The notes under the pieces were generated by a model. That model was not told the origin of the DNA. It did not search any database and saw only the letters and a program-made list of their open reading frames with translations. A program made the translations under genes and the position numbers. From positions 186,001 to 250,000 of the IMG/VR virus record IMGVR_UViG_3300045996_002337: 64,000 nucleotides of DNA; one strand, written 5' to 3'. Positions within the stretch are counted from its first letter, which is position 1; each line of letters begins with the position of its first letter. Of this stretch, positions 59,438 through 62,794 are shown one piece after another.

Positions 59438-59568
59438 AGCAACAAAGGAGCGATAACGAGTCTGCCTTTCGGCGAGGCGGCTGTCCTACCATTAGACTAC
59501 AGCTCATTGAGCCGGCGGGAATCGAACCCACGTTAACTGCTTGGGATAAACGTCATCTATCGGTTGCT
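59438..59568 (-). ncRNA. YrlA-like Y RNA (permuted tRNA module)
   Basis: GCAA-C-CGA...T arm (GTGGG TTCGATT CCCGC), acceptor closed by a loop (CGGCTC AAT GAGCTG), D arm (GTCT AATGGTA GGAC)...GCC-GAAA-GGC...TTG-TTGC. Confidence 0.75.
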
Positions 59569-59760
59569 AATCTTTTCACTCGGCCGGTGCGGTGGCTGAG
59601 GGCTTGGGCCACTTGTTAGGCTCCATTCCCCATGCTGCCCAGCGCTGCGCCCAAGTTGCCCAGTTCGTGGTGTTGTTGCCCGCGCACCGAATCGCACGTA
59701 GGGCCTCTTCCATCGAAGAAGGTTCTGTATTCAGGTCTTCGTTCATGCTGCGTTCCTTAT

Positions 59761-59847
59761 TGGTACGGGTGAGAGGATTCGAACCTCCATGGTCGCGATG
59801 ACCAACGCCTTCTGAAGACGCCGCGGCTCCCTTTTCGCCACACCCGC
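59761..59847 (-). tRNA. tRNA-Leu(CAG)
   Basis: TT-CAG-AA, variable arm, CCA. Confidence 0.8.
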
Positions 59848-60181
59848 AAATTTATGCGCCCACCTTCCGAGTACACGACTTCAAAGCATTCACCTTAGCA
59901 GCATAGTAGGATTGAGCTGACGTTCTCGAGTCCAACGAAATTAAGGCTTACTGTTCTCATGGGAAGTTGCCTCACGGACAGTTCATTCTACACGTTGACT
60001 AATTTGTAGTCAACTTGGAACACTGACAAACCAACCTGTTGACGGCGGGTGCCGGCTTTCAATTTATCGACACAGAAAAAGCGGGAACGGCTCTGTACTC
60101 CACAGCTCGAGGGAATTAGAGGGAACAGTGCGAAACTACTTCCCGAGGTCCTGCTTCCGCGGCCTCATATATCTAACTAAG

Positions 60182-60255
60182 TGGTTGCGGAGCCACGGAA
60201 TCGAACCGGCCCTTAGGGTTATGAGCCCCACGTGCTACCATCACACTCGCCCGCA
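60182..60255 (-). tRNA. initiator-like tRNA-fMet(CAT), irregular
   Basis: GGG/CCC anticodon stem, 1:72 mismatch, CT-CAT-AA, CCA. Confidence 0.7.
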
Positions 60256-60370
60256 ATTGATCGTGTCGTGGCAGGTTCTCGTAGGACACCTGCGTTTTGG
60301 TTGTCGACGTGTTTCCTCGACTTGGATTAGTCCAAGGAGTTCACTCACGTCTTTTGTCTACGACTTTGTT

Positions 60371-60460
60371 TGGAGGAGAAGGTGGGATTCGAACCCACGG
60401 GCCCCTTACGGAACCTCAACCTTTCCAAGGTTGTGCAATCGGCCGCTCTGCCACATCTCC
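60371..60460 (-). tRNA. tRNA-Ser(GGA)
   Basis: TT-GGA-AA, long variable arm, CCA. Confidence 0.9.
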
Positions 60461-60466
60461 ATTGTT

Positions 60467-60552
60467 TGGTGGGTCATCTAGGATTCGAACCTAGTGTGGC
60501 CGAAGCCGACGGGGTTACAGCCCGCTGCAGTCGCCAATGCTGCTCACAACCC
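60467..60552 (-). tRNA. tRNA-Tyr(GTA)
   Basis: CT-GTA-AC, variable arm, CCA. Confidence 0.9.
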
Positions 60553-60631
60553 AATGTTCTTGAACGACCTCAGACTTTTTATGTCGTTCGTTGCTGACAT
60601 TATCACCGCCACGTTCGCGGTAGTCAAATCT

Positions 60632-60749
60632 TGGTGGGGACTCGTGGGCTCGAACCACGGACCTACTAGATGTCTACTTTCTGCATGGACAATGGGCGCC
60701 GTTCCATGCAGTTTCGCTCTAATCGCTCTACCAACTGAGCTAAGTCCCC
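60632..60749 (-). ncRNA. tRNA-like RNA with a hairpin inserted in the anticodon loop
   Basis: Near-consensus acceptor, D and T arms plus CCA; loop holds a CTGCATGGA/TCCATGCAG hairpin; no clean 7-nt anticodon loop. Confidence 0.65.
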
Positions 60750-60842
60750 ATTTCACAGAACACACATCGAATCAACTTGTTCCCTTGGGCAGGAACACGC
60801 TGCAGGCGCTTGATTCTTTCCACTAATGTATGTGCTGTGAAA

Positions 60843-60919
60843 TGGAGCGGACAGTCGGATTCGAACCGACACTTCAAGTTTGGAAGACTCACGTGCTAAC
60901 CGTTGAACACTATGCCCGC
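60843..60919 (-). tRNA. tRNA-Gly(TCC)
   Basis: CT-TCC-AA, T73, CCA. Confidence 0.9.
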
Positions 60920-60954
60920 GCATAAACCAAGTGTTAAGGCACTTGGACACTATT

Positions 60955-61030
60955 TGGTGCCCCCACTACGATTCGAACGCAGGACCCCCGCATTACAAGT
61001 GCGGTGCTCTACCAACTGAGCTATAAGGGC
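60955..61030 (-). tRNA. tRNA-Thr(TGT)
   Basis: CT-TGT-AA, CCA. Confidence 0.92.
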
Positions 61031-61162
61031 AAAATTACAATGATTGAGTCCACCCTCAAACTCTCTTACTCTTGGATGGAAATGTCTTGTCTTCGCAAAG
61101 GCGACCCCGAAGAGTTATCCGAATCGCCACGGACTTCAGCCGCTAAGCCGCATCAATCAAAC

Positions 61163-61249
61163 TGGTGGGTACTGTAGGATTCGAACCTACTCACGCAATA
61201 GCGAACGGGGTTACAGCCCGCTTCAGCTCTCCAACTCTGACGAGTACCC
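61163..61249 (-). tRNA. tRNA-Tyr(GTA)
   Basis: CT-GTA-AC, variable arm, CCA. Confidence 0.88.
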
Positions 61250-61260
61250 ATAAAACTAAA

Positions 61261-61321
61261 GTCAACAAAAGATACGGCGAGGGGTTGCCTAATGAATGAT
61301 AACCCTCAACCTACGGTTGAC
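61261..61321 (-). ncRNA. minimal Y-RNA-like RNA (61 nt)
   Basis: GTCAA-C-CG...GAGGGTTATC...CCCCTC...TTTTG-TTGAC. Confidence 0.55.
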
Positions 61322-61326
61322 AAATT

Positions 61327-61401
61327 TGAGATTCGAAGAAGGAATCGAACCTTCGTTGCCCGACTTTAATGTGGGGTGCGTTACCACTACGCCATTCGAA
61401 T
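61327..61401 (-). pseudogene. pseudo-tRNA, anticodon unresolved (loop contains ATTAAA)
   Basis: Good acceptor, D and T arms; distorted anticodon arm; 3' end C-TCA. Confidence 0.5.
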
Positions 61402-61406
61402 GTTTG

Positions 61407-61479
61407 TGGAGGTAGGGAGGATCGAACTCCCGACATCTAGCTTGCAAAGCTAGCGCTCTCCCAGCTGAGCTATACCCCC
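61407..61479 (-). tRNA. tRNA-Ala(TGC), no encoded CCA
   Basis: G3.U70, TT-TGC-AA. Confidence 0.88.
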
Positions 61480-61613
61480 GAGATTTGGCGGGCAAGTAGC
61501 CTTCAATAGGGGCCCAATCCTATGAAGCGGTATCGGATCTACAAGACAGAAGACCTTCCATTCCGGTTTTTGATGTCTGACGCTTAGCGTAACCGGCGAA
61601 ACATTCAGCTGAT

Positions 61614-61688
61614 GTAAGACGGCAGGAGTCGAACCTGCAAAGTATCCCGTGGTCGGTGTGCCAATTCCCGTTTAACTACCACGTCTTA
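61614..61688 (-). ncRNA. tRNA-like RNA lacking an anticodon arm
   Basis: TAAGACG/CGTCTTA acceptor, GCAGG-TTCGACT-CCTGC T arm, GGAATTGGCA D-loop-like segment. Confidence 0.5.
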
Positions 61689-61694
61689 ACATTT

Positions 61695-61770
61695 TGGAGC
61701 GGGCAAAGGGGTTCGAACCCTCGACATCGACCTTGGCAAGGTCGTGCTCTACCAACTGAGCTATACCCGC
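61695..61770 (-). tRNA. tRNA-Gly(GCC)
   Basis: TT-GCC-AA, T73, CCA. Confidence 0.93.
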
Positions 61771-61999
61771 ATAAATTCTTGGGAAGCTGTTAACTTACGC
61801 TAGACCGCTCCCCACGTCGTCGCAGCCGAATCAAAGCTTCGGAAGGCTTTAGGACCGGCATAGTTTCCACAGCCGGGCTCCACCACTCGGTGTCTAATGT
61901 CACCGAGACCATAGGGCAATTATCGGCCAGGGCCCCTCAACAGTGTTCCGACACCGTAAGATGTGGTACCGTCCATCGCTTTCACGACGCTGTTGTTCT

Positions 62000-62076
62000 T
62001 GGTCGGAACAGTAGGATTCGAACCTACGACCCTCTGGTCCCAAACCAGATGCGCTACCAGACTGCGCTATGCTCCG
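62000..62076 (-). tRNA. tRNA-Pro(TGG)
   Basis: TT-TGG-GA, CCA. Confidence 0.92.
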
Positions 62077-62112
62077 AATGTTCTATTTAGCAATTATATT
62101 ACATGTGCTTTG

Positions 62113-62188
62113 TCTGGGCGACAGGATTCGAACCTGCGACCTCTCACTTCCAAGGCGAGCCGTCTGACCTGACTGACAATACGCCCAG
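62113..62188 (-). tRNA. tRNA-Pro(TGG), no encoded CCA
   Basis: CT-TGG-AA; leader TGTGTTTTGT pairs with trailer ACAAAGCACA. Confidence 0.8.
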
Positions 62189-62360
62189 ACAAAACACACA
62201 TAAACAAAAGATTGTTGAAGCTTCCTCTTGAGGCTCTGGGCCGGTTTTATCGGGATCCCAGCTGGGCCTTGTACCCAGTCAACAAAACTTTATTGAAATC
62301 GGCGGATCTAAACAGCCTCCTGGCGTCCTAAACCCCGGATAGGGGAACCGAAATATAACT

Positions 62361-62444
62361 TGGTGCGCTCGGGGAGACTCGAACTCCCACGCCTTTCGGC
62401 ATCAGTCCCTCAAACTGACGTGTCTACCGTTCCACCACGAGCGC
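62361..62444 (-). tRNA. tRNA-Leu(GAG)
   Basis: TT-GAG-GG, variable arm, CCA. Confidence 0.9.
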
Positions 62445-62520
62445 TTTTACCTCTGAATTTTCCTTTTGAGAAGGTGTGCGTTGACAGTTTGGACAGAGCA
62501 ACGCCCAGAAACACATGAGA

Positions 62521-62613
62521 TGTTGAACGACGGGATTCGAACCCGCACATTGCGCCGGTGATTAGCCGGTGCTAAGTATACCAATTCCTCACGTTATGCA
62601 AACACGTTCAACA
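62521..62613 (-). ncRNA. tRNA-like RNA, anticodon AAT, 9-bp acceptor, 12-nt insert before the D arm
   Basis: TGTTGAACG/CGTTCAACA; CT-AAT-CA loop; T arm intact; no CCA. Confidence 0.55.
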
Positions 62614-62663
62614 AAATCAACCATGCGCGGCTACCAATTACGCCACGAGTGCATTAAAACAAG

Positions 62664-62794
62664 AGCAACAAAGGGCGATAACGAAAAGCCTTTCGGCGAG
62701 CCGGCTGCCTTACCACTTGGCGACTATCAATTGCTCGATAGGTAGGATTCGAACCTACGTTTAGCTGGATAGATAATCATCATCAACGGTTGCT
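62664..62794 (-). ncRNA. YrlA-like Y RNA (permuted tRNA module)
   Basis: GCAA-C-CG...T arm (GTAGG TTCGAAT CCTAC), 7-bp acceptor capped by GCAA tetraloop, D arm (GCC AAGTGGTAA GGC)...GCC-GAAA-GGC...TTG-TTGC. Confidence 0.8.

Follow-up and report, generated by a model that had tools for sequence, protein, structure and literature searches.

Two RNA genes of 135 nt, el1 and el2, which lie within the tRNA array of a jumbo phage, are most probably phage-encoded Y RNAs of the YrlA type, with predicted Ro60 binding. Y RNAs and their protein partner Ro60 have been found in animals, in about 5% of bacteria and in certain phages, and the kind of RNA described here, a Ro60-associated Y RNA of the YrlA-type family, is already known; what is unusual in el1 and el2 is their location 62-66 kb from the Ro60 gene, their setting in a tRNA array and their degenerate CGAA motif. 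The window analysed is a stretch of 64,000 nt (positions 186,001 to 250,000 of IMGVR_UViG_3300045996_002337) with at least 47 tRNA genes. The span 59438-62794 is the outer envelope of the two elements, which are separate genes on the minus strand with more than 12 tRNA genes and another copy of the family between them. el2 starts 5 nt past the encoded CCA of tRNA-Thr(tgt) (62802-62875), el1 ends 4 nt ahead of a tRNA-like acceptor stem, and neither has a promoter or terminator of its own within the surrounding co-oriented tRNA array. The window also encodes a CCA-adding enzyme and an RNA ligase; the latter matches Pfam RNA_ligase (PF09414) and not RtcB, the RNA-repair gene brought up by the first-pass annotation. 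Thg1 is encoded just outside the window. The parts of the two elements are as follows.

59436-59570, minus strand: el1, complete YrlA-type Y RNA-like gene, 135 nt
59563-59568, minus strand: el1 P1 5' strand AGCAAC, pairs with GUUGCU at 59438-59443
After P1, to 59557, minus strand: el1 CCGAUAG, at the place of the GNCGAAN0-1G (CGAA) motif
59551-59557, minus strand: el1 P2 5' strand GAUGACG, pairs with CGUUAUC at 59452-59458
59545-59549, minus strand: el1 UUAUC (YUAY motif), 3' of the P2 5' strand
59515-59531, minus strand: el1 T arm GUGGG-UUCGAUU-CCCGC (Rfam alignment and pair list)
59500-59514, minus strand: el1 acceptor-stem hairpin, 6 bp, AAU loop (Rfam alignment and pair list)
59483-59497, minus strand: el1 D arm GUCU-AAUGGUA-GGAC, with U8-A9 just before it
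59464-59473, minus strand: el1 GCC-GAAA-GGC hairpin (pair list)
62662-62796, minus strand: el2, complete YrlA-type Y RNA-like gene, 135 nt
62789-62794, minus strand: el2 P1 5' strand AGCAAC, pairs with GUUGCU at 62664-62669
62778-62784, minus strand: el2 P2 GAUGAUG, pairs with CGUUAUC at 62677-62683
62772-62776, minus strand: el2 UUAUC (pair list)
62742-62758, minus strand: el2 T arm GUAGG-UUCGAAU-CCUAC (Rfam alignment and pair list)
62724-62741, minus strand: el2 acceptor-stem hairpin, 7 bp, GCAA loop (Rfam alignment and pair list)
62707-62721, minus strand: el2 D arm GCC-AAGUGGUAA-GGC, 3 bp plus A.A (Rfam alignment and pair list)
62688-62697, minus strand: el2 GCC-GAAA-GGC hairpin (pair list)

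Pair lists and Rfam alignments bear out the order of parts given in the first-pass annotation, which is common to both elements: P1, a CCG internal loop, P2, UUAUC, a 5-bp stem with a central A.C, the T arm, the acceptor hairpin, U8 and the D arm, the GCC-GAAA-GGC hairpin and the return strands of P2 and P1 (CGUUAUC ... UUUGUUGCU). The tRNA-like domain hence runs from the T arm through a loop-closed acceptor to the D arm and is closed by a short stem without an anticodon loop. The YUAY motif ahead of the variable-loop region, a feature of YrlA (PMC4201824), is present as UUAU inside UUUAUC in el1 and inside AUUAUC in el2. At the position of the GNCGAAN0-1G (CGAA) motif on the 5' side both sequences are degenerate, reading ACCGAUAG in el1 and ACCG-UUG in el2, and exact GCCGAAAG occurs in the two elements only within the 3' hairpin. 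Features of substrates for tRNA modification (pseudouridine 55, dihydrouridine) are retained in the UUCGA T loop and the GG D loop, together with the 7-bp acceptor of el2, which has the length at which RNase P cuts Mycobacterium smegmatis YrlA (PMC4201824).

This structure is upheld by covariation. As had been noticed from the letters alone, stems of different sequence keep their pairing, and comparison of el1 with el2 reveals six double compensatory changes, of which the acceptor stem has four and the T and D stems one each, along with a C-G to U.G change in P2. The A.C mismatch, which the same annotation had counted as covariation, was wrongly taken as such: it is present in both elements and reflects common ancestry, the real covariation being in other stems. 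In an alignment of 47 family members, 96.1% of cells are paired versus 61.7% after shuffling and about 40% when the partners are slid, and double-sided changes are found in 34 of 36 pairs, a count made on a model-fitted alignment that leans towards structure. Helix 1 (P1) is 96.4% paired with all six pairs altered on both sides, helix 2 (P2) 96.9% with double changes in 7/7 pairs, and helices 3-6 range from 87.5 to 99.1%, including helix 4 (T arm, 99.1%), helix 5 (acceptor, 98.2%, double changes in 6/6 pairs) and helix 6 (D arm, 95.2%). Helix 7, the hairpin of GCC-GAAA-GGC type, is an optional module, found in 28-29 of the 47 sequences (about 60%) and 98.8% paired. Folded singly, the two sequences have unremarkable minimum free energy z-scores (-0.67 and -0.97), and hence support for el1 and el2 comes from comparison and not from thermodynamics.

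Covariance-model searches point in the same direction. The Rfam YrlA model (RF02553) aligns to both elements over its full length (model 1-114), el1 with 39.1 bits (E=7e-6 in 10 kb) and el2 with 21.3 bits; the proposed check with Infernal thus gave full-length matches in both, but neither reaches the gathering score of 69 bits, nor was this score reached in any of 19 jumbo-phage TROVE loci. This cut-off is not decisive for phages, since the published-type mycobacteriophage Y RNA of Bxz1, 195 nt upstream of the Ro gene, attains just 32.5 bits over part of the RF02553 model. Two further models were built: R1 from el1 and el2 alone (self-scores in the window 157.3 and 149.4 bits, respectively) and R2 from 28 TROVE-adjacent RNAs of other phage contigs, none of them from the window. 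With R2, the scores are 96.2 bits for el1 (E=1.7e-22) and 86.1 bits for el2 (E=7.4e-20), well beyond chance in the 64-kb window and over model 1-130 in each case, although this test is not fully independent, as the training RNAs of R2 were chosen with R1. The two elements lead all other R2 matches in the window with a margin of more than 55 bits, and they exceed the best match (81.5 bits) in 80 loci that constitute an independent sample, having been chosen solely by their divergent TROVE protein. In the R2 consensus gUUAUC is kept, with GcCGaaag at the position of the CGAA motif.

The phage genome also carries a Ro60 gene, in the same orientation as el1 and el2, and so the proposed search for TROVE in the phage was positive.

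About -4747 to -3119 relative to the window (about 3.1-4.7 kb before its start), same strand as el1 and el2: TROVE plus vWA_Ro60 gene (Pfam hits)

Its 542-aa product on contig Ga0456371_00000085 (= IMGVR_UViG_3300045996_002337) carries PF05731 TROVE and PF25045 vWA_Ro60, an identity that rests on precomputed Pfam hits in the gene table. el1 and el2 lie 62.6 kb and 65.8 kb from this gene, as compared to no more than about 4 kb for published YrlA genes. Neither a TROVE profile nor tblastn picked up such a gene within the window or in the 5.2 kb past its end. In a gene-free gap about 380 nt upstream of the phage TROVE gene, which is the canonical place for such an RNA, a copy of the RNA family is found (23.7 bits, E=1.5e-4) that reads GUGAC-CGAACG ... 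AUUAUCU ... CAUUUGUCGCU, with CGAA present.

The same RNA family flanks TROVE genes in other phages. Across 79 TROVE loci R1 gave 54 matches at E<=1, all 54 on the TROVE strand, of which the full-length ones lie directly upstream or downstream of the ORF with up to 64.7 bits; further R1 matches adjoin TROVE genes in L099, L134, L144 and L157. In the 80 divergent-TROVE loci, R2 found matches in 60, and the total of 99 matches are all on the TROVE strand, most of them within 500 nt of the TROVE ORF. Altogether well over 100 loci link the family to TROVE genes, and the homology of el1 and el2 to TROVE-flanking RNAs extends to hundreds of phage loci. CGAU, CG-UUG and CG-UAG variants of the CGAA motif are also present in TROVE-adjacent relatives. 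The YrlA-like reading of the first-pass annotation is supported by the Rfam full-model alignment, by these reciprocal R1 and R2 matches at TROVE genes and by the presence of Ro60 in the same phage.

Within the window, the basal module is found in six solid copies (el1, el2 and four others, c3 to c6), and up to three more copies are partial or doubtful; the earlier count of seven was about right.

61259-61323, minus strand: c3, short copy with basal module only, P1 GUCAAC/GUUGAC, CCG, P2 and GUUAUC (R1 23.3 bits, R2 24.9 bits, fold)
57490-57610, minus strand: c4, basal module plus a different 64-nt insert (R1 23.3 bits, R2 26.2 bits, fold)
10100-10181, minus strand: c5, short copy in the first tRNA array, CUGAAC-CCG...GGUUAUCA...GCC-GCAA-GGC-UUUG-GUUCAG (fold)
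13170-13248, minus strand: c6, paralogue of c5 and in the same tRNA array (fold)

Such an expansion had been thought undescribed; however, phage Y RNAs, jumbo phages included, and several of them per locus are already published (PMC4201824, PMC12135203).

Mechanistically, the paired 5' and 3' ends would form the basal module, made of P1, an internal loop in which CCG faces UUUG, and P2, which is proposed to serve as the docking site for the phage's own Ro60 (TROVE and vWA). The distal tRNA-shaped domain, with its T arm, closed acceptor and D arm, would offer a tRNA-like surface to a second partner, whose putative identity by precedent may be host PNPase, or else RNase P, the CCA-adding enzyme or modification enzymes. 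As to expression and processing, el1 and el2 would most likely be co-transcribed with the tRNAs and freed by tRNA-processing nucleases. A wider scheme, tentative and in our judgement rather doubtful, is that of at least eight Y RNAs forming a modular library, in which one Ro60-docking stem with varied heads, spread in tRNA arrays and matured by tRNA enzymes, would steer one Ro60 to several partners, and the same family would accompany two TROVE clades that diverged deeply, across hundreds of uncultivated phages. The distal modules of such a library would comprise a full tRNA mimic, a GNRA hairpin and other inserts, and its partners during infection might be, for example, host PNPase, RNase P, the CCA-adding enzyme and RNA-repair enzymes.

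An improbable alternative, and the one that survives best, is that el1 and el2 are tRNA mimics of Y RNA descent that act independently of Ro60, either as decoys or competitors for host enzymes or for defence nucleases recognising the elbow or acceptor, or as processing punctuation of the array. Their location among tRNAs at 62-66 kb from the TROVE gene and the degenerate CGAA motif in both would fit such a role, and so would their close relatives in the jumbo-phage contigs L124 (97.8 bits), L163 and L164, which are likewise within tRNA arrays and in whose loci no TROVE gene was found (TROVE profile and tblastn in the 13-kb locus of L124; tblastn alone in the L163 and L164 loci). However, the full basal module (P1, CCG, P2, UUAUC, UUUG) is kept, as in the TROVE-upstream copy and in TROVE-adjacent RNAs elsewhere, and degenerate motifs are found in TROVE-adjacent members too. 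Distance alone is weak evidence, because in contig IMGVR_UViG_3300028800_000066 copies also lie 7-18 kb from a TROVE gene.

It is very unlikely that el1 and el2 are circularly permuted tRNA genes, whose ends would be joined and whose acceptor loop would be opened to yield a working tRNA, as in Cyanidioschyzon merolae. The 3' half of the tRNA-like unit does precede the 5' half, as it does in those genes and in two-piece or permuted tmRNA, the order of T arm, acceptor and D arm fits, an RNA ligase and a CCA-adding enzyme are encoded by the phage and the acceptor stem of el2 has 7 bp. Unlike permuted tRNAs and tmRNA, el1 and el2 have no anticodon or mRNA-like part, and no 7-nt anticodon loop can be formed in them; the acceptor is closed by a tiny loop of just 3-4 nt (AAU or GCAA), the ends pair into a long, conserved stem of two helices that bears Y RNA motifs, and not into a bulge-helix-bulge junction, and the family's tie to TROVE genes in well over 100 loci also speaks against this route. 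A splicing endonuclease such as this route would require is not known from bacteria or phages, and Rfam tmRNA and permuted-tmRNA matches to the elements are weak and partial. Chance or relic junctions of adjacent tRNA genes, where one tRNA's T arm runs into the D arm of its neighbour, are a known false positive of YrlA models and do occur among the many tRNA genes of this window (Rfam YrlA at 62051-62141, 22 bits, model 27-81; R2 at 12159-12217, the best such artefact, 30.2 bits, model 40-92), yet this hardly credible origin of el1 and el2 is refuted, as the artefacts match mid-model only with at most 30 bits versus end-to-end matches of 86-96 bits, in el1 and el2 the two acceptor strands pair across a loop of 3-4 nt and co-vary between the copies, and ARAGORN calls no tRNA at either element.

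The preferred reading of el1 and el2 as YrlA-type Y RNAs can be set against several known systems. YrlA (RF02553), a Y RNA of tRNA-like form, is a ligand of Rsr/Ro60 in Salmonella and Mycobacterium smegmatis, and also in mycobacteriophages (Chen et al. 2014, PMC4201824). Shared with YrlA are a basal stem made by the 5' and 3' ends and interrupted by an internal loop, the YUAY motif (UUAU in this case), the order of T arm, loop-closed acceptor and D arm with U8, the GG D loop and the UUCGA T loop, and the presence of several Y RNAs per genome on the strand of the TROVE gene. Unlike YrlA, el1 and el2 score below the Rfam gathering threshold, have a degenerate 5' GNCGAAN0-1G motif, carry an extra GCC-GAAA-GGC hairpin on the 3' side and lie inside a tRNA array 62-66 kb from the TROVE gene and not within 4 kb of it. 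A further precedent is Thermus phage phiLo, with its Ro60, Yrl1 and Yrl2 and host PNPase (PMC12135203, 2025), and as in the present phage both Ro60 and Y-like RNAs are phage-encoded and share a stem-bulge-stem module with a CGAA-type motif, with CGAA itself found here in the TROVE-upstream copy. Yrl1 and Yrl2 lie directly upstream of the Ro60 gene and are, as described, of hairpin type without a tRNA-like domain (PMC12135203), whereas the present copies are dispersed and two of them have the full domain. Deinococcus radiodurans Yrn1, as summarised in PMC4201824, combines a Ro60-binding stem with partial tRNA-like features and tethers Rsr to PNPase; compared by description, it differs in its anticodon-like arm and in having no full D arm. 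The members of the R2 family, TROVE-adjacent RNAs found in uncultivated phages and in Ralstonia phage RsoM2USA, have the same architecture element by element, the optional GNRA hairpin included, and in RsoM2USA the family copy lies between tRNA-Pro and tRNA-Gly, 4.8 kb upstream of TROVE ORF57. Unlike that family, P1 here ends in AAC before CCG, where GGG is usual, and the present phage has more copies per genome, farther from the TROVE gene.

If the wider scheme is true, the RNA family would occur in far more than the 22 phages of the 2014 report. With one Ro60 gene and many Y-like RNAs that bear different heads on the same putative docking stem, the present phage would be a natural experiment bearing on the role of the tRNA-like domain and on why phages carry a Ro60/Y RNA system, the more so as these RNAs sit amid tRNA genes and adjoin enzymes of tRNA maintenance (RNA ligase, CCA-adding enzyme, Thg1). 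For annotation, the Rfam YrlA threshold misses phage Y RNAs, and a simple covariance model recovers them at two TROVE clades in most loci tested, which should allow better annotation of jumbo phages.

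The window spans positions 186,001–250,000 of a 349,660-bp contig from an uncultivated jumbo phage, IMGVR_UViG_3300045996_002337 (JGI Ga0456371_00000085), and in it at least 47 tRNA genes were identified by ARAGORN, every one of them on the minus strand. Two genes for YrlA-type Y RNA-like molecules of about 135 nt, designated el1 and el2, are located within the second of two main tRNA arrays:

9.1–13.5 kb, minus strand: main tRNA array
55 kb to beyond the window end, minus strand: main tRNA array
59436–59570, minus strand: el1
62662–62796, minus strand: el2

A first-pass annotation had placed two Y-like RNAs with permuted tRNA modules in the span 59438–62794, and the two are indeed separate minus-strand elements, with the described order of modules present in both. 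Each is enclosed by a 6-bp outer helix P1 (AGCAAC/GUUGCU), followed by an asymmetric internal loop with CCG... in its 5' strand and ...CCUUU in its 3' strand, a 7-bp P2, an unpaired UUAUC, a stem of 5 bp with A.C at its centre, and a T arm. The acceptor stem, comprising 6 bp with an AAU loop in el1 and 7 bp with a GCAA loop in el2, leads into U8, a D arm whose loop contains GG, and the hairpin GCC-GAAA-GGC. When aligned, el1 and el2 are about 85% identical and differ mostly in stems, with six two-sided pair changes (one in the T stem, four in the acceptor and one in the D stem) and the replacement of C-G by U.G in P2. Single-sequence folding z-scores of -0.67 and -0.97 are not exceptional, and hence the case for these RNAs rests on comparison. 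Exact motif searches of the window for strands specific to el1 and el2 revealed nothing besides the two elements themselves.

The Rfam YrlA model (RF02553) aligns el1 and el2 along its full length with the T-acceptor-D topology, with scores of 39.1 bits for el1 (E=7e-6 in a 10-kb search) and 21.3 bits for el2 (E about 1). The expected resemblance to YrlA was thus borne out by a full-length alignment of both RNAs, but not at the 69-bit gathering score, under which both fall. When this gathering score is applied, only tRNAs are found in the window and YrlA is absent from 19 jumbo-phage loci centred on genes for the Ro60-type protein TROVE, and the RNA found 195 nt ahead of the Ro gene in mycobacteriophage Bxz1, which belongs to the group of phages from which Y RNAs were originally described (PMC4201824), reaches only 32.5 bits over a partial model. 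Because of these two results, the RF02553 gathering threshold is too strict, and hence uninformative, for phages. Tandem tRNAs constitute a known source of false positives for YrlA-type models (PMC4201824), and such matches in the window are partial and low-scoring, as exemplified by 62051–62141 with 22 bits over model positions 27–81.

A covariance model built from el1 and el2 (R1) was applied to 79 IMG/VR loci, each collected around a relative of the TROVE proteins of Bxz1 (gp220) and Agrobacterium phage Atu_ph07, and gave 54 matches at E<=1, all 54 on the TROVE strand, with a top score of 64.7 bits (E=5e-14) and full-length matches in about 20 loci, a few hundred nt up- or downstream of the TROVE ORF. 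In a further 115 loci retrieved by a pattern scan (T loop, 35–60 nt, then GCCGAAAGGC), R1 matches adjoin TROVE genes in L099, L134, L144, L157 and L187. Other R1 matches, led by L124 with 97.8 bits, belong to tRNA arrays on further jumbo-phage contigs, in loci where no TROVE gene was found. A second model (R2) was trained on 28 TROVE-flanking RNAs, none of them from the window, and with filters off it recovers both RNAs in full length, el1 with 96.2 bits (E=1.7e-22) and el2 with 86.1 bits (E=7.4e-20), the runners-up in the window being tRNA junctions at no more than 30 bits and 57490–57610 and 61259–61323 at about 25 bits. Since the R2 training set had been chosen with R1, an independent set of 80 loci was added, selected solely by similarity to a divergent TROVE (ORF57 of Ralstonia phage RsoM2USA and relatives). 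R2 found 99 matches at E<=1e-3 in 60 of these 80 loci, all 99 on the TROVE strand and mostly less than 500 nt from the TROVE ORF. The ORF57-like clade, represented by L371–L450, L370, L159, L189, L101, L139 and L188 and by at least 326 loci in IMG/VR, scores only 32 bits with Pfam TROVE and is undetected by mycobacteriophage Ro tblastn at E<=1e-3. RsoM2USA itself (L369, MG752970) contains an unannotated Y-like RNA at 49,859–49,993 (locus 11860–11994, minus strand; R2 45.9 bits), with tRNA-Pro on one side and tRNA-Gly on the other, 4.8 kb upstream of ORF57; the tRNAs at this site are likewise unannotated in the GenBank record. Multiple copies per locus are common elsewhere, L116 having four and both L136 and L056 having three.

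In an alignment of 47 family members, standard pairs make up 96.1% of pair cells, as compared to 61.7% after shuffling and 36–46% with slid partners, a very large margin even though the alignment was fitted to the model and is thereby biased toward the structure. Two-sided changes are observed at 34 of the 36 pairs, with every helix supported, and the GNRA hairpin is optional, occurring in about 60% of members. YrlA RNAs were defined by Chen et al. by a tRNA-like domain and a GNCGAAN0-1G motif near the 5' end, which is thought to touch Rsr (PMC4201824), and the study of phage phiLo emphasizes a CGAA motif in a bulge (PMC12135203). At this position the TROVE-adjacent RNAs have the R2 consensus GGgcCGaaag, and el1 and el2 contain CAACCGAUAG and CAACCG-UUG, respectively, retaining the CCG core, with the first G swapped via a compensated P1 pair and AA missing. 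Variants of the same kinds are found in TROVE-adjacent members (GCCGAUCG, GUCG-UUG, GUCG-UAG and GCCGUACG). The idea that the 3' GCCGAAAGGC hairpin stands in for a degenerate 5' motif was dropped, since many relatives carry both.

No TROVE gene was found in the window or the 5.2 kb past its end by tblastn with Bxz1 gp220 and 81 TROVE proteins or by a TROVE profile run against all stop-to-stop pieces, and three protein-guided IMG/VR scans for TROVE relatives did not return the contig among the best 80 of 250–326 (two scans) or the 50 obtained via two peptide patterns (third scan). The contig gene table does contain a 542-aa product with PF05731 TROVE and PF25045 vWA_Ro60 domains at about window -4747 to -3119, corresponding to about 181.25–182.88 kb of the contig, and so the TROVE protein that the first-pass annotation had proposed to look for in the phage is, by Pfam annotation, encoded outside the window on the same contig. 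This gene is on the strand of all these RNAs, has a 605-nt gap without genes upstream, and is accompanied by Thg1, NADAR, NUDIX, HNH and RF-1/PCRF-domain genes. In the 2.9 kb that precede the window, taken from IMG/VR (L451) and stopping 222 nt short of the TROVE start codon, a family member was found within this gap:

L451 156–266, minus strand: TROVE-proximal family copy (R2 23.7 bits, E=1.5e-4)

It lies upstream of the TROVE gene, at a distance of about 380 nt from the start codon, and has P1 AGUGAC/GUCGCU, CGAACG, AUUAUCU and CAUUUG, and a second 5' module (ACAAACCG...GGUUAUCC) begins 30 nt beyond it. Thus, the basal module of el1 and el2 (P1, internal loop and P2) is the module found at the canonical Y RNA position near the Ro60 gene of this phage.

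This basal module is common to six minus-strand copies in the window, namely el1, el2 and the following four, among which P1 and P2 co-vary (P2 of el1 being GAUGACG/CGUUAUC); doubtful or partial copies are also listed:

61259–61323, minus strand: c3, basal module, P2 UGAGGG/CCCUCG
57490–57610, minus strand: c4, basal module, P2 UGUCGG/CCGAUA
10100–10181, minus strand: c5, basal module
13170–13248, minus strand: c6, basal module
about 9700–9830, minus strand: doubtful or partial copy
63666–63729: doubtful or partial copy
30615: doubtful or partial copy

With six solid copies and these doubtful ones, the initial count of seven Y-like RNAs in three architectures is roughly right. At about 9700–9830, a T arm, the 3' strand of an acceptor and ACCA come after a 5' module of the family type (GCUCAACCG...GGUUAUCC); neither the return strand of P1 nor a 5' strand for the acceptor was found there, and R2 gives 22.6 bits on 9825–9943. 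This may be a Y-like or tmRNA-like piece that has been split or truncated. Remote from the tRNA arrays, a further good 5' module (GCUCAACCGCUACGCUGGUUAUCA) is present at 30590–30615 (minus strand), where no convincing 3' partner was found.

RNAs of this kind are already known, as Y RNAs adjacent to Ro60 genes were described from 22 phages in 2014 (PMC4201824), TROVE proteins of jumbo phages were noted in 2021 (PMC7824862) and a phage Ro60-Yrl-PNPase complex was characterised in 2025 (PMC12135203). Less ordinary are the dispersal of copies within tRNA arrays tens of kb from the Ro60 gene, the modular nature of the family and its accompanying two divergent TROVE clades in most phage loci sampled. 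The analysis establishes the fold and its conservation, ties the family to TROVE genes and places a Ro60 gene in the same genome. By analogy with YrlA/Rsr, Yrn1 of D. radiodurans and phage phiLo, the basal module would be predicted to bind the phage Ro60, and from the same three systems the tRNA-like head may engage a second factor, either PNPase of the host or tRNA enzymes. Neither el1 nor el2 is flanked by a sigma-70-like promoter or a terminator, el2 starts 5 nt past the CCA of a tRNA-Thr, and el1 ends 4 nt ahead of the acceptor stem of a tRNA-like RNA. Because of this tight spacing and the lack of their own signals, the simplest and most likely route, judged from sequence, would be transcription of el1 and el2 with the tRNA array and their release by RNase P and 3' tRNA processing.

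A few nt after el1 and el2, at 59300–59432 and 62518–62650 (minus strand), odd tRNA-like RNAs are present, neither of which is called by ARAGORN. The RNA behind el1 combines a D arm, a T arm and encoded UCCA with an acceptor (GCGUUGU/GCGGCGC) that includes three U.G pairs; its variable region is long, and a long GCAA-capped hairpin takes the place of the anticodon arm. In the RNA behind el2, the 7-bp acceptor is perfect (GUUGAAC/GUUCAAC), a T arm is present and the D/anticodon region is aberrant (Rfam tRNA 22 bits), with an apparent tRNA 5' half upstream. Rfam tRNAs missed by ARAGORN or over-long are found at 60635–60749, 56228–56332 and 60186–60254 (all minus strand); two of them measure 115 nt and 105 nt, which suggests insertions, and one of the three is barely at the tRNA threshold (29.4 bits).

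Among the phage-type proteins that the window encodes are an RNA ligase (PF09414), a CCA-adding enzyme, a calcineurin-like phosphoesterase and a UvrD-type helicase, and the first three together with the Ro60 cluster look like an extended tRNA/RNA-maintenance region. By the RNA ligase, the nearest isolates are RsoM2USA (62% identity) and Caulobacter phages of the CcrBL9 group. At the DNA level, the region has no similarity to isolated phages beyond tRNAs, and with the region or either element as query, megablast and blastn against isolated phages gave T-arm/tRNA matches only, with no close relative. The sole homologue in the window of the RsoM2USA TROVE neighbourhood is that of ORF52, at 1520–2335, and there are no annotated tRNAs around the RsoM2USA RNA ligase. 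The window RNA ligase (17947–19014, minus strand) matches phage RNA-ligase families across its whole length, and its N-terminus (residues about 14–80) also gives weak HNH-endonuclease matches. Directly downstream of the tRNA/Y RNA array, 58319–59266 (minus strand) encodes a YkuD-type L,D-transpeptidase with a peptidoglycan-binding domain, an unusual placement for such a gene in a phage, and its N-terminus resembles a signal peptide as judged by eye.
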